Source: Piromyces finnis finn (Eukaryota; Fungi; Neocallimastigomycota). From it: 64,000 nucleotides of DNA. The stretch spans positions 372,001-436,000 of the forward strand of contig MCFH01000020.1 of NCBI GenBank assembly GCA_002104945.1, read 5' to 3'. The position numbers and the translations under genes are program-made. The notes below the pieces were generated by a model. The model was given only the letters and a program-made list of their open reading frames with translations, made no database searches and was not told the origin of the DNA. Shown here one piece after another: positions 21,731-29,755 of this stretch; position 1 is the first letter of the stretch, and each line of letters starts with the position of its first letter.

Positions 21731-23365
21731 TTATTCTCTTATTTTTTTAGAATTTTTTTTATATCCTTTTTTCTCTGGTGTAGTCAAATAATGATGTGAT
21801 CTTTCTCTACTAGTAATCATATTCAATATTCTTTTTTCTTCTTCATCGAAAAGTAATGGATCTTTTCCTGTTGGATTTCCTTTTCCTTTATCTTCAATGT
21901 TCAAATTTTGGCAATGGAGATTAGGCCATTCACCTTCACCATCTTCAACGTAATAAGCATCAAAGCGAAGTAATATATTATTATATTTTTCATTATTTTT
22001 ATCTTTAACGATACTATCATTCCAGAAAAGAATTTTTCCATCTCTTGTTGTATGACCAACATGTCCACAGATTTGTCTTTCATCTGGATCATCACCAGCT
22101 TCACCAACATTTAATTCACCTACTAATACACTTGGTACTGGAAGCATATTGTATGGTTGGCGAGCCATATCAAAACCAATCCAAAATGTCTCCTTATCAC
22201 CTTGAACATATTTATAAACTACATCATCACGAATTCTTTGTTCATTTAATTTACAAACTGATAATAAACCAAGAATATTTTTTGTTTTATTCATTACGAC
22301 TGTACTTGATTCCATTTCATGAGATGTTTCTTCTTTCCAATAACGTAATTCTTTAGTATCTGGTAATGGATCAAACATCCATGATTTTAACCACCGTGAA
22401 CCATTGTGTGAACCAGGGAATAATGTACGATCACGGAAAAATATTGTACCTTTTTCGAGATAACCTTCATCTTCAAAAAGAATGGCTGGATCACGTATAT
22501 ACATAGCATCAGCATCCATTAATATAATTTCTTCAAAACGGGAAGCTAAAACAGAGAAAGGTTTAATAGCCCATCCACCAAGATTAATGATATTATTATC
22601 AAAAAATTCGGAAATATCAGTAAGATATACATTATCAAATTTAGAAAGTGTTTCTTGTTTATGTTTTGGTAAATCATTATCGCCATTATAAAAAATTTCT
22701 ATTGGAAGTTCTGTTTTAATAACATAACGAAGAGTATCAATAATACTTCTTGCAAAGTTAAAATGATGATTACCAACACACATAACAATACCTCTTCCAC
22801 TATATGAACTCAATAAGTCTCCCAAAGACTTAAATTTTTTATTATATACCCATGGATAGAGAGACTGATGTAATGTAGCTAAAAGCTTTTGAGGGATTGG
22901 TAATTCATTTAAATCTTCACTTAAGAGAAAAGATGATTCTTTAATTAAGGTTTCTTTATCAACATTATTTTTATCTTCCGATTTATTAAAAATTAAATCC
23001 CATAAAGCTGCATGAGCTTCTTGTTTTTGTCTTAAACTAATGAAATCTTCTGTAGGTGTTTTTCTTTCAAAATTTTCTAATAATAATTTTCCCATTACCT
23101 TATTTATTTTATCTTTTTCCTTTTTATTTAACGTACATTCAGAAAGGCATGCCATTAAATCATCATTATCTAAGTTGTAATTTTCAATAGCTTTATTAAT
23201 ACTAGTATTATTGTTTTTGAGAATACTTTTGAAATCATCTGTGGTTAATTTATTAGAAAAATCATCAATAGTAGTTGGGCGAATTGATAATAATAAAATA
23301 GATATAAAGACGATGGTTATTATGATAAATATTAATACTAAAAACCTTCTTTTTAACAATATCAT
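21731..23365 (-). CDS. GT71 (MNN1/MNN2/MNT-like) Golgi alpha-mannosyltransferase, intronless
   Basis: 544-aa ORF with an N-terminal TM anchor and the motifs GRGIVMCVG, LPIEIFY, GWAIKPFSVLASRFEEIILMDADA (DxD), GTIFFRDR, HEMESSTVVMNK and YVQGDKETFW. Confidence 0.88.
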   Translation of the reverse strand: MILLKRRFLVLIFIIITIVFISILLLSIRPTTIDDFSNKLTTDDFKSILKNNNTSINKAIENYNLDNDDLMACLSECTLNKKEKDKINKVMGKLLLENFERKTPTEDFISLRQKQEAHAALWDLIFNKSEDKNNVDKETLIKESSFLLSEDLNELPIPQKLLATLHQSLYPWVYNKKFKSLGDLLSSYSGRGIVMCVGNHHFNFARSIIDTLRYVIKTELPIEIFYNGDNDLPKHKQETLSKFDNVYLTDISEFFDNNIINLGGWAIKPFSVLASRFEEIILMDADAMYIRDPAILFEDEGYLEKGTIFFRDRTLFPGSHNGSRWLKSWMFDPLPDTKELRYWKEETSHEMESSTVVMNKTKNILGLLSVCKLNEQRIRDDVVYKYVQGDKETFWIGFDMARQPYNMLPVPSVLVGELNVGEAGDDPDERQICGHVGHTTRDGKILFWNDSIVKDKNNEKYNNILLRFDAYYVEDGEGEWPNLHCQNLNIEDKGKGNPTGKDPLLFDEEEKRILNMITSRERSHHYLTTPEKKGYKKNSKKIRE

Positions 23366-24319: not shown

Positions 24320-27300
24320 ATGAGTGCCAATTTTAGAAAAGCAATTACTGGTTTTTGTTATACAAAAAATGGTGAAATTCTAATTACAGAAAAATGTCTT
24401 TCGATACATGAAATAAAACTCAGAAACAAATATTCTGAGATTAGTAAAAAAAAAGTTAACTTAAATTCGAGTAATACCTATTTAAATGTAAAGAATAATA
24501 AAATAACCCTTAAAAAAAAAGGAGAAGAATTAATTAAAAAACAAATTGAACTCTACAATAAAAAATTAAGATTTTTCTTTGATTTTAATTTAAATGGGGA
24601 ATTTCAAACAGAAAATAAAACTACTACATTTTTAGCTAATAAATTAAAATACTTCCCGAAATTCAGAAATTTAATTGACTTTTTAATGTGTTACGTTCAA
24701 TTAAAAAATTCTATTAATGAAAAAGTCTATATAGAAGATATTGAAAATTATCTAAATAATCAAAAAATATTTTCTAAAAAAATTAGCATATATTTCAAAA
24801 GTTTAATTAGAGGATATAGAAGTTTTTTTAAGTCAACTTTAAAATCTATTTTTCAAATTAGTAGTAACAATAAAATTCAATTTTCTGATAGAGTCACTAG
24901 TAGTATAAATAATACTAAAAGAAAAATAAATGAAAAAAGTGAAAAATATAAAATAATGCAAATTAAATTAGATTTGTTTAATTATTTAAATAAAAAAAAA
25001 AGAAACACGATTTCTTATGAAGATGTTAAGATGATTATAGAAAAAAATAACATGAAAAGTAATAAAGATATTATAGAAACTGTATTAAATATAAAAGATA
25101 ATTACTTTATATTAGATAATAATGTATATAATGTAAATATGAATATTCGTAATAATATAAAAGAATATGATAATAATAAAAGTTTTATATCCCAATGTGT
25201 ATGGCTACATCCTTATTTTGAAAAATGCTTAGTAATCATTATTGATTTTCTAAAAATGCATGAATTAATAGGATCAACAAAAATTACAGTTGAATCAGCT
25301 AATAATTGGTTGTTGAATCATTACTCCCTAGATGATTCAGAAAAAGAAATAATGAAAACATTTCTTAAAGAATGCAAAGACCTTAATACATTTTTAAGTT
25401 TTGATATTAATTCTGATATATTTAAAATTGTTAAAGAGAATAATACTGAGTATGTAATCCTTCAAGCTGATTCGTTAAACAAAAATAAGATTGAATTAGA
25501 ATCATTATATCAAAAGCATCTTTTGAAAAATCAACCATTAATACTAGAACCTTATAATGATAATTTTTTACTATTAAATTACTCATACTTATCATTAAAA
25601 AAGAGCGATTGGGATGATATAGAAAGTTTCACATTAGAAATTTTTATTATATTTTTTATGGCATGTTACAAAAGTTTTGGAGTAGTATGTAATAGTCAGT
25701 TTTTATTGGAATTAATTGGAAAATACAAAATTCCAATTAAAAGTCTTACAATTAACTATCTTGAAGAATTAATATCGAAAAAAAAATATATAATAACTCA
25801 TAAAATTAAAATATCTAATAGTAAAAATTCTTCAGAAGAAATATTACGTCTATGTTTTGATAATATAAGTATGATAAAGATAAGAAGTTACACGGATGAT
25901 TACAGTAGTGATGATGATAGCGATGATTATAGCGATGATTATAGCGATGATGATAGCGATGACGATAGCGATGATAAAAATGATGATGAAAATGTTTTAA
26001 ATGATATTGAAGCCAAAAATGAATCATCAAAACTGGATAACAATGTTACTATTGAAAATAAAGAGTTTACCGAAAAAAATGATGATGATGATAATCCTAT
26101 TAATAATAATGAATTTAGCCAAGGTAATAATGAGTCTTCAAGTTTAAATTTGAATAAAACCAGTTCAATAATAAATCCAAAAATTGAACTTACGCAAGCT
26201 AACTATGATAATCAAAATCAAGGAAAAGCTTTAAGTTTACCTAGTTCACCGAAATCATATCTTAATAGTTTAGTTATAAATAATCAAGCTCAACATAATA
26301 GTAATTTACGACAACCTCCAGGCCTTGAAAATCAAAATGCCAAAAGTTTCCCTAATTCACCAAAAATAAACTTTGATGTTTCAGCTCCAAATTATCAACC
26401 TCAGGATTATAATGATTTTTATCAACCACCTCCAGGTTTCGAAAGTCAAAGCATTAAAGATTTTCCTAATTTACCAAAAGCAGACTTTGATGTTTCAGCT
26501 CCAAGTTATCAACCTCAAGATTATAATTATTTTTATCAACCACCACCAGGTTTCGAAAGTCAAAGCATTAAAGATTTTCCTAATTTACCAAAAACAGACT
26601 TTGATATTTCAGCTCCAAGTTATCAACCTCAAGATCATAATGATTTATATCAACCTCCAGGTTTCGAAAGTCAAAGTATTAATGGCTTTCCTAATTCACC
26701 AAAAACAGACCTTAATGTTTCAGCTCCAAGTTATCAACCTCAAGATCATAATAGTTTTCATCAACCTCTAGGTTTTGAAAATCAAAGCATTAATGGCTTT
26801 CCTAATTCACCAAAAACAGACCTTAATGTTTCAGCTCCAAGTTATCAACCTCTAGGTTTTGAAAATCAAAGCATTAATGGCTTTCTTAATTCACCAAAAA
26901 CAGACCTTAATGTTTCAGCTCCAAGTTATCAACCTCTAGGTTTTGAAAATCAAAGCATTAAAAGTTTTCCTAATTCGCCAAAAACAGACCTTAATGTTTC
27001 AGCTCCAAGTTATCAACCTCTAGGTTTTGAAAATCAAAGCATTAAAAGTTTTCCTAATTCGCCAAAAACAGACCTTAATGTTTCAGCTCCAAGTTATCAA
27101 CCTCTAGGTTTTGAAAATCAAAGCATTAAAAGTTTTCCTAATTCGCCAAAAACAGACCTTAATGTTTCAGCTCCAAGTTATCAACCTCAAAATTACCCTA
27201 ATAATTTTGAAGATGACGATTTTGAAGATATTTTTAAAGATGATGATGATGATGATTCTAATGAAAGTGAATCTAATTATGAAAATGAAACGTATGTAAA

Positions 27301-29755
27301 TCCGGAAATTGATGACTTATTGAAAAAAGCTGATATTCAATTTAGAAATAACAGAGGACTTTCTGAAATTTATGCCTTGGATATTATATTAGACTCAATT
27401 CTAAATATTATTATAATTTCAAGTAAAGAACTATTGAATATTAATATAGTTCCATTAGATGTTTGTGTTAAGTATATTCAAATGTTTAAAGATATTTTCG
27501 AAGATGAACTCTCTGGAAATATAATTGACGAAACCTATTTATTAAATTACATCAAACAAAGAAAAGAAAAAATTCATGAAATAATAAAAATAGATAATAA
27601 TTATATATATATAAGTTTTGCAAATGAAATAATGACTGATAAATATATACAAAAATTAGGGAATATAAATAATAAATTTAATGACAGTAATTTCAAATAT
27701 AATGTTGAACAATTAATACAAGCAATAAAAACACCAAAGATTTTAAAAGATAATCCATTAAAAGCATATATTAATAATTATATTACCTTCTTCCCAATAT
27801 ATAAAGATCTTTTCTATGATATCATTGAAATATTAATTCCGGAAGATGAAATGGCTTTAGATGTATTAGGATCAGTTATAATTAATAATTGTGATCATAA
27901 ATTTAATAAAAATTATTATCAATTCTTACTTCGTGCTTCTAATGGTATAGAATCATTTATTTTTAAAACATCAAATCATGAAAAGTTTTTTTCAAAAAAT
28001 GAAAATAATAATGTATTTATTGATCTATCTAAACTTGATAATGTAGATTATAAAAAGGAATTAAACAAAATTTTTGAAAATAATGAAGAAAATAAAAACG
28101 ATATTATTGTTATTTTACTTCTTATTTTCTTGATTTCATATGGAGAATACGATAAAAATAAAAATGAAATCTTATTATTATTGGAAGAAATCGAATTCTT
28201 TTTTGGTTATTTTACTGATATTGATTATTTACCATTAATATCAATTATCAAAGAATATAATAATGGTTTAAATTTACTAGAAGATGGATATAAACTCATT
28301 ACTTTTAAGCTTAATAATAAGGAAATGCAACCTAGTAATTTTGATTCTAAAGAAGATACTCTTCGAAACCTTTTAAATAATTTTATTTTTACTTTTAATA
28401 AATCATTAAAAGAAGAAAATATAAATGATTTTATGAAAGGGTATATTGAATATTTCCCTATTATTCAGAAATTAAAAGATAGTATAATACAATTATTACA
28501 ACCAGGTTATTACAACAGTGTAGAATATATTAACGCTAATTTAAAAAATTACATAACACAATTTGGTTTGAGTCTTTATGATTACTACACTAGCTGCTGT
28601 TCTAATAGTCTCGAAACTATTCTTGAACATGATAAAGATTTTTCATTCTATAAATTTAATGGACGCATCTACTGCAAATATAATCAAAAGTATAAGGAAA
28701 ATGAAATAAATAACATAAATAAAAAGCTTGATGATTCTATTGTTGCTATTGTCAAAGACTCATTACCAGAAGAAGAAGATTATAAGCGTTTAGAAAAATT
28801 TGAGAAGAAAATGAAAAAGATAATAATGAATGAAAAACAGTGGAAAAATTATGAATTAGAAGTACATCGTTTTGGTTCATCTAAAAATGGACTTTGGAGT
28901 AATCAAAGTGATATTGATTTATGTATTTTTGCTAATAATTCAAAAGGTCAATATATTGACATTAATATGCACAAAATTGCCCATGTTTTAAAAGTTAATG
29001 GTATGATAAATATAGAACCTATTATTCATACACGTATCCCAATTTGTAAATTTGAGGATCCAGAAACTGGCTTCAATTGTGATCTCAGTTGTAATAATCG
29101 TATTCCAATCTATAATTCTGAACTTATTGCTTGTTATATGAAATTTGATGAACGAGTTCGTGATATTGTTATGATTGTTAAAAAATGGGCAAAAGAACGC
29201 TGTATCAATAGTTCGAAAGACCGTACTTTTTCCAGTTATACTTTTGTACTCCTATGTATTGCTTATTTCCAAATAATTGATCCACCAGTTCTTCCAAATC
29301 TTCAAAATAAAATAGCTAATATTGATATGTTTGAAATTGACGTTAATGTTTCCAATAAATTACTTAATAAAAATTTATCAGGTTATTATCTTGAAAAAGT
29401 TAGATTTTATAATGACATTAAAAAAATAAGTCGATACTTTATTTCTAAAAATGAATCAAGTCGTAGAGAACTTTTACTGGGTCTTTTTAAGTTTTATGGT
29501 TGTGACTATCATTTCGAAGATGTTATATGTAACATTCGAGTCGATGGAAGTTTCGAAAAAGTTCATGATTACTTACATAATAATAAAGATTATATATTTG
29601 CCGTAAAAGATCCATTTATTAAAAAAAGAATAATTAATTGTAATTCTGGAGAAGATGAAAAGCGCCATATCATTAACGAATTTTATCGCGCTTATAACAT
29701 ATTAAAAAATACAAATGAATTAAATGCCATTTTTAAAAATGATGATATCGTTTAG
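24320..29755 (+). CDS. Giant intronless Cid1/TUT/GLD-2-family RNA nucleotidyltransferase with N-terminal winged-helix-like repeats and a central motif array
   Basis: 1811-aa open frame. The C-terminus carries FGSSKNGLWSNQSDIDLCI (DxD), HTRIPICKF, CDLSCNN (third Asp), KKWAK, FSSYTFVLLCIAYFQ..PPVLPNLQ and VKDPF, which are the pol-beta NTase plus PAP-associated domain signatures. Confidence 0.9.
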   Translation: MSANFRKAITGFCYTKNGEILITEKCLSIHEIKLRNKYSEISKKKVNLNSSNTYLNVKNNKITLKKKGEELIKKQIELYNKKLRFFFDFNLNGEFQTENKTTTFLANKLKYFPKFRNLIDFLMCYVQLKNSINEKVYIEDIENYLNNQKIFSKKISIYFKSLIRGYRSFFKSTLKSIFQISSNNKIQFSDRVTSSINNTKRKINEKSEKYKIMQIKLDLFNYLNKKKRNTISYEDVKMIIEKNNMKSNKDIIETVLNIKDNYFILDNNVYNVNMNIRNNIKEYDNNKSFISQCVWLHPYFEKCLVIIIDFLKMHELIGSTKITVESANNWLLNHYSLDDSEKEIMKTFLKECKDLNTFLSFDINSDIFKIVKENNTEYVILQADSLNKNKIELESLYQKHLLKNQPLILEPYNDNFLLLNYSYLSLKKSDWDDIESFTLEIFIIFFMACYKSFGVVCNSQFLLELIGKYKIPIKSLTINYLEELISKKKYIITHKIKISNSKNSSEEILRLCFDNISMIKIRSYTDDYSSDDDSDDYSDDYSDDDSDDDSDDKNDDENVLNDIEAKNESSKLDNNVTIENKEFTEKNDDDDNPINNNEFSQGNNESSSLNLNKTSSIINPKIELTQANYDNQNQGKALSLPSSPKSYLNSLVINNQAQHNSNLRQPPGLENQNAKSFPNSPKINFDVSAPNYQPQDYNDFYQPPPGFESQSIKDFPNLPKADFDVSAPSYQPQDYNYFYQPPPGFESQSIKDFPNLPKTDFDISAPSYQPQDHNDLYQPPGFESQSINGFPNSPKTDLNVSAPSYQPQDHNSFHQPLGFENQSINGFPNSPKTDLNVSAPSYQPLGFENQSINGFLNSPKTDLNVSAPSYQPLGFENQSIKSFPNSPKTDLNVSAPSYQPLGFENQSIKSFPNSPKTDLNVSAPSYQPLGFENQSIKSFPNSPKTDLNVSAPSYQPQNYPNNFEDDDFEDIFKDDDDDDSNESESNYENETYVNPEIDDLLKKADIQFRNNRGLSEIYALDIILDSILNIIIISSKELLNINIVPLDVCVKYIQMFKDIFEDELSGNIIDETYLLNYIKQRKEKIHEIIKIDNNYIYISFANEIMTDKYIQKLGNINNKFNDSNFKYNVEQLIQAIKTPKILKDNPLKAYINNYITFFPIYKDLFYDIIEILIPEDEMALDVLGSVIINNCDHKFNKNYYQFLLRASNGIESFIFKTSNHEKFFSKNENNNVFIDLSKLDNVDYKKELNKIFENNEENKNDIIVILLLIFLISYGEYDKNKNEILLLLEEIEFFFGYFTDIDYLPLISIIKEYNNGLNLLEDGYKLITFKLNNKEMQPSNFDSKEDTLRNLLNNFIFTFNKSLKEENINDFMKGYIEYFPIIQKLKDSIIQLLQPGYYNSVEYINANLKNYITQFGLSLYDYYTSCCSNSLETILEHDKDFSFYKFNGRIYCKYNQKYKENEINNINKKLDDSIVAIVKDSLPEEEDYKRLEKFEKKMKKIIMNEKQWKNYELEVHRFGSSKNGLWSNQSDIDLCIFANNSKGQYIDINMHKIAHVLKVNGMINIEPIIHTRIPICKFEDPETGFNCDLSCNNRIPIYNSELIACYMKFDERVRDIVMIVKKWAKERCINSSKDRTFSSYTFVLLCIAYFQIIDPPVLPNLQNKIANIDMFEIDVNVSNKLLNKNLSGYYLEKVRFYNDIKKISRYFISKNESSRRELLLGLFKFYGCDYHFEDVICNIRVDGSFEKVHDYLHNNKDYIFAVKDPFIKKRIINCNSGEDEKRHIINEFYRAYNILKNTNELNAIFKNDDIV
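26312..27187 (+). repeat. In-frame tandem repeat, 9 units (core 84 nt / 28 aa, QP[P/L]GFENQSIxxFPNSPKTDLNVSAPSY)
   Basis: Visible in both DNA and protein. Units 2-5 have an extra QPQD[Y/H]NxFY-type spacer, and the last three units are identical. Confidence 0.95.

Follow-up and report, generated by a model that had tools for sequence, protein, structure and literature searches.

The window analysed here is a 64,000-nucleotide stretch of the genome of Piromyces finnis (Neocallimastigomycota; contig MCFH01000020.1, positions 372,001 to 436,000), with a G+C content of about 20%; coordinates below are those of the window. Its forward strand carries a long open reading frame (ORF) for a terminal nucleotidyltransferase, and inside a linker of this protein lies an array of nine tandem repeats. 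Each repeat pairs a peptide that resembles PAM2, a motif recognised by the MLLE domain in poly(A)-binding protein (PABP), with a PPG-hydrophobic motif of the kind read by GYF domains, or with its PLGF variant. The gene and the array are organised as follows (aa, amino acids; nt, nucleotides).

24320..29755, forward strand: host gene, a single stop-free ORF of 1811 aa, terminal nucleotidyltransferase specific to Neocallimastigomycota
24320..25909, forward strand: N-terminal domain region (aa 1-530), conserved, with 52% identity to orthologue P0002 and 41% to orthologue P0003, absent from the short Neocallimastix form
25906..25989, forward strand: acidic Ser/Asp/Tyr tract SDDDSDDYSDDYSDDDSDDDSDD, encoded by tandem copies of a 12-nt repeat, where the disordered linker begins
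26249..26314, forward strand: decayed unit 0, LPSSPKSYLNSLVINNQAQHNSNLRQ (aa 644-665), with SPK and L-N kept and A7, P8, Y10 and P12 lost
26315..26764, forward strand: units 1-4, 37-38 aa each, with PPG[LF] at 26315, 26429, 26543 and 26654
26315-26425, forward strand: unit 1, starting with PPGL
26426-26539 and 26540-26653, forward strand: units 2 and 3, starting with PPPGF
26654-26764, forward strand: unit 4, starting with PPGF
Starts at 26366, 26480 and 26594, forward strand: PAM2-like motif of units 1-3, F-D variants
Start at 26705, forward strand: PAM2-like motif of unit 4, L-N form
26765..27184, forward strand: units 5-9, 28 aa (84 nt) each, with PLGF at 26765, 26849, 26933, 27017 and 27101
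Starts at 26816, 26900, 26984, 27068 and 27152, forward strand: canonical-register motif TDLNVSAPSYQP of units 5-9
27185..27274, forward strand: acidic/aromatic linker tail, NFEDDDFEDIFKDDDDDD...
27242..28699, forward strand: middle domain (aa 975-1460), predicted to fold into four modules of a helix bundle plus a hairpin, predicted local distance difference test score (pLDDT) 74.9
28727..29752, forward strand: catalytic domain, with Pfam MTPAP-like_central, NTP_transf_2 and PAP_assoc

The span 26312-27187, for which nine tandem units had been predicted with starts of PPGL, PPPGF or PPGF that give way to PLGF in the last five, is in frame with the ORF (aa 665-956), and the translation agrees with that description, the units themselves occupying aa 666-955. 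Every unit (9/9) has SAP[SN]YQ and then a proline; the four residues ahead of SAP are NFDV, DFDV or DFDI in units 1-3 and DLNV in units 4-9. An aromatic spacer of 9 aa, PQD[YH]N..[YH]Q, is part of each of units 1-4, and these units differ pairwise at 5-14 of 37 codons; removal of the nine residues PQDHNSFHQ turns the 37-aa unit into the 28-aa one. Units 5 and 6 are 1 nt apart from each other and 4-5 nt from units 7-9, and the latter, as predicted, are identical (0/84 nt differences). Consistently, Tandem Repeats Finder reports a period of 84 (5.1 copies, 98% match, score 795) along with periods of 111-114 (4.5-4.8 copies, 85-91% match), and its period-225 row begins at 26240, near the decayed unit 0. 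PLGF and PPGF differ by one base (CCA to CTA), so that the five PLGF copies probably stem from one mutated, later amplified unit.

The array is rich in Pro, Ser, Asn and Gln (15.5% Pro) and contains few order-promoting residues, and AlphaFold2, run on the single sequence, returns a mean pLDDT of 55.6 with no residue as high as 90 and a predicted template modelling score (pTM) of 0.55. By composition and pLDDT, then, the PAM2-like motif resides in a disordered region. Chance alone would yield the PAM2-type pattern 0.009-0.017 times, and PPG-hydrophobic 0.004-0.023 times, per protein of the same composition. The PAM2-type scanning pattern, an ELM-style LIG_PAM2_1 expression, occurs in none of the other stop-free stretches of the window and in just 1 of ~145 other Cid1-family representatives. 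A search of the array sequence against the Protein Data Bank gave phage fibre noise only (E>1), and Pfam scans of the protein, the array, the units and the orthologue segments gave, beyond the catalytic domain, weak rows for domains of unknown function (DUF), Xin and Homer-binding, all below their cut-offs.

Its sequence assigns the host to the Cid1/TUT4/CutA-type terminal nucleotidyltransferases. Pfam recognises MTPAP-like_central (PF22600, 3.6e-29, 102.1 bits against a cut-off of 27), NTP_transf_2 (PF01909, 35.3 bits, cut-off 21) and PAP_assoc (PF03828, 28.4 bits, cut-off 22.6), and the closest solved structures are those of TUT4, CutA, URT1, TUT7, GLD-2 and Cid1 (E ~1e-34 for URT1). The catalytic G-S, the D-x-D and the third Asp are present as FGSSKNG...DIDL...CDLS, aligned to the corresponding residues of TUT4, CutA and URT1. 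Further on, after the conserved DPF, the LNHNLG of TUT4 lies opposite INCNSG, its His being Cys here and Ser in the orthologues. The His at that position of TUT4 selects uridine triphosphate. Because it is replaced, the sequence does not indicate which nucleotide is added, and we name the enzyme a terminal nucleotidyltransferase and not a terminal uridylyltransferase. The same stretch after the DPF, 29650-29700 (aa ~1778-1792), also has a possible 4-residue insertion, IKKR. With CutA, Cid1, TUT4/7 and GLD-2 the protein shares the catalytic core, the PAP-associated domain and the catalytic carboxylates; the predicted winged-helix arrays that flank its linker are, in contrast, peculiar to the family in Neocallimastigomycota. 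When 1.84 billion representatives were searched exhaustively, the middle domain turned up in no more than a few proteins, all from Neocallimastigomycota; every other match concerned the catalytic domain only.

Is the motif older than the array? Our comparison set comprises six distinct family members. In a tree of the middle and catalytic domains, the window gene pairs with P0002 (support 100/99), P0003 joins this pair (94/99), and a second clade unites P0167, a long Neocallimastix paralogue, with P0005 from Orpinomyces (98/99); the short Neocallimastix form, P0175, is left unresolved by this tree. P0002, at 44% overall identity, contains SNLNVFAPKYTP and, 7 residues on, PPGFE, and P0003, at 40%, contains SSLNVLAPSYNP and then two PPGL. 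Both occurrences sit at the homologous place of a linker that is otherwise barely alignable, and in the linker alignments the motif blocks stand out as visible islands of identity, the PAM2-like motif among them. Locally, SPKINFDVSAPNYQPQDYNDFYQPPPGFE of the window is aligned opposite SPKSNLNVFAPKYTPQNIQKL---PPGFE of P0002, which points to an ancestral module in the order SPK, PAM2-type peptide, spacer, PPGFE. The two orthologues thus have in common a single-copy module, SPK-x-x-LNVxAPxYxP then PPG[FL], and the motifs are kept in all full-length members of the P0002 and P0003 90% clusters. The original prediction had made itself depend on conservation of the Leu, Ala, Pro and Tyr positions in orthologues; all are kept in P0002 and P0003, and it is not refuted on this count. 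At 26366-26650, F-D occupies in units 1-3 the two positions that are L-N in units 4-9 and in the orthologues. Since the orthologues suggest that L-N is the ancestral form, the oldest units appear to have drifted away from the PAM2 register and the youngest to have kept it.

The PAM2 consensus reads LNxxAxEFxP, in which a pair of hydrophobic pockets receives Leu3 and Phe10, a turn is stabilised by Asn4 and Ala7 is needed on steric grounds (PMC7356810); in a fungal PAM2 peptide bound to Pab1's MLLE domain, Leu, Phe and Pro are essential (PMC11572963). Leu3, Asn4, Ala7 and Pro12 are in register in units 4-9 (6/9) and in P0002 and P0003, and the array peptides KTDLNVSAPSYQPQ and ADFDVSAPSYQPQ are candidate MLLE ligands. 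GYF domains of the Smy2/GIGYF class accept PPG-hydrophobic peptides, both prolines of which lie on an aromatic surface; the Gly is needed for steric reasons, and a class-specific cavity accommodates the hydrophobic residue (10.1101/2021.08.20.457040). Within the disordered region, PPG with a hydrophobic residue that is not Trp after it occurs in four units (one PPGL and three PPGF), once in P0002 and twice each in P0003 and P0175.

The repeat anatomy, the enzyme family, the motif conservation and the chance expectation were observed here; both binding partners and the functional consequence we infer. The reading that we consider best, at a probability of roughly one half, is that a conserved module of a PAM2-type peptide and PPG[FL], borne by a tailing enzyme and multiplied nine-fold in one species, is a candidate docking site for PABP and GYF proteins. 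Three known systems raise the prior for such docking: the PPGF motif of plant URT1 with the co-purifying EXA1, the combination of PAM2 and PPGL in animal GW182, and the multiple PAM2 motifs of fungal Upa2.

How might such a module act? We envision a scenario whereby an older short linear motif (SLiM) module in the disordered linker of a Neocallimastigomycota nucleotidyltransferase, composed of SPK, LNVxAPxYxP, a short spacer and PPG[FL]E and still single-copy in the two orthologues, would have been amplified in tandem in a species-specific manner. The PAM2-type peptide would dock into the MLLE domain of the fungal poly(A)-binding protein, with Leu3 and Tyr10 filling the two hydrophobic pockets, Asn4 holding the turn and Ala7 facing the surface, and PPG[FL] would dock on a GYF domain of the Smy2/GIGYF type. 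Together, the two motifs might hold the tailing enzyme at mRNA 3' ends coated with PABP and at repression or decay complexes linked to GYF proteins, a logic shared with PPGF of plant URT1 and with PAM2 plus PPGL of animal GW182. In P. finnis, replication slippage would then have multiplied the module, and the 28-aa subfamily would have arisen by a 27-nt deletion together with the CCA-to-CTA change from PPGF to PLGF, to be copied five times recently. Such PLGF copies would retain the PAM2-type half and probably have a weakened or lost GYF half, the net outcome being a higher avidity for PABP. Phosphorylation near PAM2 motifs is reported to tune PABP binding in Tob2 (PMC7430666), and the conserved SPK that precedes the motif could by analogy play a similar role.

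Several observations weigh against docking on PABP and GYF proteins. The main binding determinant of PAM2, Phe10, is Tyr in 9/9 units and in both orthologues, albeit a conservative aromatic change, and in the literature consulted we found no tested natural PAM2 motif with Tyr at position 10. Units 1-3 in addition have F-D in place of L-N, so the PAM2 register holds for Leu, Asn, Ala and Pro in units 4-9 and breaks down at these two positions in units 1-3 and at position 10 throughout. The proposed check with the Pfam PAM2 hidden Markov model (PF07145) came out negative, since neither the whole protein nor the array, the single units or the orthologue segments gave a match at E<=10, in a scan that is insensitive to a short divergent motif because the HMMER filters drop most matches above ~0.1. 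As judged from its sequence, the motif is therefore PAM2-like on paper, yet it lacks two features by which membership can be tested, a match to the Pfam profile and Phe or Trp at position 10. On the GYF side, PLGF in 5/9 units breaks the PPG core that is contacted through both prolines; the predicted PPG-hydrophobic motif is thus borne out in the four PPG[LF] units and lost from the consensus in the five others. Conservation, too, has its limits. P0175 retains PPGL and PPGF and has no PAM2-type motif, and P0167 and P0005 have neither kind. The module is seen in two independent orthologues only, which is a small sample, and the nine-fold array is confined to P. finnis. What had been proposed as a multivalent PABP/GYF array hence stands as regards the nine units, with the multivalency specific to this species and single copies in the orthologues. 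Finally, the presence of an MLLE-bearing Pab1 and of a Smy2-type GYF protein in P. finnis is assumed from their wide fungal and eukaryotic distribution. The orthologue sample is small because further searching led back to the same proteins: word-based homologue searches with the middle domain and with the most conserved N-terminal block recovered the same few and none new, and a scan of metagenome contigs yielded one 1.4-kb fragment that does not include the linker.

The invariant Tyr, never Phe in any copy or orthologue, is also an argument for a different partner. The motif might be a genuine SLiM that is read by an MLLE domain of the Rrm4 type, a type that accepts Tyr-containing aromatic cores, by a proline reader of the WW or EVH1 type or, intramolecularly, by the enzyme's own predicted winged-helix arrays, and we regard this as rather unlikely. 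It would account for the missing Pfam match, the unit also contains FPNSP and AP.Y as proline contexts, and an F-x-Y core, with its Tyr, redirects recognition in Ustilago maydis from the Pab1 MLLE to MLLE3 of Rrm4 (PMC11572963). The F-x-Y core and an acidic run directly before the Tyr, both of which define PAM2L, are however absent from the array, while L3-N4-x-x-A7-x-x-aromatic10-x-P12 is the exact PAM2 register and the presence of PPG[FL] beside it in a tailing enzyme parallels URT1 and GW182. WW domains read [LP]P.Y and not AP.Y, which speaks against a partner of that class. A number of established motifs were considered for the same peptide and rejected: PAM2L for want of the F-x-Y core, the FDF motif because the sequence is DFD, the WW ligand [LP]PxY because the array has AP.Y, and the eIF4E-binding YxxxxL-hydrophobic motif.

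Alternatively, the array might be the product of neutral amplification, in which slippage in an AT-rich, low-complexity linker duplicated a segment where the ancestral motif chanced to lie, the extra copies, and perhaps the motif itself, being devoid of a selected function. The youth of the repeats fits such an origin, since units 7-9 are identical and units 5-9 at most 5 nt apart, too young to show selection; one copy suffices in the orthologues, and the change from PPGF to PLGF was propagated uncorrected. In Upa2, the phenotype tested required none of the four PAM2 motifs (10.1101/455378). P0167, moreover, contains at aa 600-700, the same linker position, an unrelated tandem repeat of KAKDNGNDKN in ~8 copies, which indicates that the linker of this family is repeat-prone and expands repeats independently across lineages. 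Set against this, the older units 1-4, despite pairwise differences at 5-14 of 37 codons, all retain SAP.YQP and PPG[LF], and the single-copy motif persists in lineages that share only 40-44% overall identity and whose linkers can otherwise barely be aligned. We consider neutral amplification unlikely. Very improbable, in our view, is that the repeats fold into a beta-solenoid-like or stacked-strand domain instead of serving as disordered docking peptides. Single-sequence AlphaFold2 does place a strand of 6-7 residues per unit on TDLNVS, at a pTM of 0.55, but the low pLDDT, the 15.5% Pro and the paucity of hydrophobic residues argue otherwise, and orthologues with a single unit cannot form a solenoid. 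Stacking is a common artefact when near-identical repeats are predicted without an alignment.

Docking of a candidate PAM2-type and PPG[FL] module thus remains the reading we prefer, and comparison with known systems helps to delimit it. PAM2 proteins such as Paip1/2, eRF3, GW182, Tob and fungal Upa1 have the same register (L3, N4, A7, P12 and an aromatic residue at 10) and, like the host, carry it as a conserved island in a disordered region of a protein of mRNA metabolism; the host array differs by Tyr in place of Phe (or of Trp, in LARP4), by Ser in place of Glu9 and by F-D at positions 3-4 of three units. Upa2 of U. maydis is fungal as well and bears multiple PAM2 motifs within disordered regions; its binding to the Pab1 MLLE rises with PAM2 number, and its four motifs were called exceptional (10.1101/455378). 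Those four are dispersed over a transport scaffold, whereas here six motifs in canonical register and three variants form a strict tandem, made by recent duplication, within an enzyme. The host shares its catalytic family with Arabidopsis URT1, which has a conserved PPGF in a disordered region and with which the GYF protein EXA1 co-purifies as the top protein (PMC7910438), linking URT1 to decay and repression factors. In URT1, the disordered region is N-terminal and contains the motifs M1 and M2, with no mention of PAM2 in that report (PMC7910438); the disordered region of the host, by contrast, is internal, lies between predicted winged-helix arrays and contains a PAM2-type motif as well. GW182/TNRC6 carries both kinds of motif, as the original prediction had stated and the literature agrees: PAM2 and PPGL occur within one disordered region of its silencing domain and couple PABP and GIGYF-4EHP. 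It is nonetheless a non-enzymatic scaffold with single motif copies and a non-canonical PAM2 of the animal type, and is not homologous to the host.

A more far-reaching version, which we put forward tentatively and would rather doubt than expect, is that the tailing enzyme docks directly on PABP through a lineage-specific, Tyr-type PAM2 and on GYF repressors through PPG[FL], with the nine copies in P. finnis allowing a single enzyme molecule to contact several PABPs on a tail simultaneously. If so, PABP occupancy might gate tailing or render it processive, and the enzyme would represent a fungal case of convergence on plant URT1 and animal GW182, with the largest PAM2-type array seen. Target choice by non-canonical tailing enzymes is largely unresolved, the link known from plants being the short motifs in the disordered region of URT1. 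A PAM2-type motif in a tailing enzyme would, if functional, connect PABP to 3'-end tailing by a direct route not described before; we found no open literature that combines PAM2, MLLE and uridylyltransferase. Should the Tyr-for-Phe form bind, the accepted PAM2 code would be widened. The array might also be viewed as a natural experiment on motif valency, in which slippage multiplies the module and the PPGF half decays while the PAM2-type half is kept. Its practical weight is limited, as P. finnis is a non-model anaerobic gut fungus and the partners are predicted only.

The public protein model of this gene, ORX50707.1 (P0001, P. finnis), is 100% identical to the window translation from aa 313 on, except for one gap of 56 aa. 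Its start corresponds to aa 313 of the ORF, so that 24320-25255 of the window is left out, and the 168 nt that it lacks further on can be placed at 26772-26939, inside the repeat, with GT..AG ends. Given that the N-terminus is fully kept in the orthologues, the model looks truncated and wrongly spliced, and the seven units of the public protein versus nine in the window are probably an annotation artefact caused by a spurious intron. A polymorphism between seven and nine units was considered and rejected, because the 168-nt gap fits GT..AG and the same model is N-terminally truncated. Unitigs from four public P. finnis runs (three studies) show no differences in the parts of the array that they cover, including several unit junctions, although they end within the repeat and none spans it. 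The junction of unit 4 with unit 5, lacking in the 7-unit form, is present in unitigs from the four runs, and a joint supporting the 7-unit form is present in none of them. In DNA run X1, the piece of units 7-9 has 3.3x and the short-unit junction piece 4.7x the flank depth, about what nine units would lead one to expect, these being depths and not copy numbers. The array had been called still expanding; the three identical units are the only ground for that, the 7-unit model being a probable artefact, and we do not uphold the claim, as the identical units indicate recent duplication and no more than that.

Predicted winged-helix, LOTUS-like arrays flank the disordered linker on both sides. 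In an exhaustive structure alignment with the middle domain, the LOTUS domains of TDRD5, TDRD7, Oskar, MARF1 and Tejas rank 1, 3, 4, 5 and 19, with Z of 6.2-7.5 (6.8-7.5 for the first four named), root-mean-square deviations of 2.7-3.0 over 70-78 residues and, as is to be borne in mind with this aligner, a Z <8 that may mean a common arrangement only. Foldseek with the middle domain found nothing at E<=1e-3, its weak tandem winged-helix matches including RPC62, SarS and the Roquin ROQ domain, and Pfam OST-HTH had no match in the host protein. The predicted fold is thus suggestive of a LOTUS-like identity for the middle-domain modules. As for P0175 (1010 aa; syntenic locus L001, 5155-6642), the entire N-terminal region of ~600 aa is missing, and a tblastn search for that region in the 1.5 kb between its gene and the upstream mannosyltransferase gave no trace. 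The acidic Ser/Asp/Tyr tract at the start of the linker could, from its composition, be a phospho-acidic patch of the casein-kinase type. The neighbour upstream of the host gene is the following.

21731-23365, reverse strand: glycosyltransferase of the Mannosyl_trans3 type, with 61% identity to the corresponding neighbour in Neocallimastix

This mannosyltransferase and the host gene form a divergent pair that is conserved across genera, with synteny shown for P0002 and P0175.

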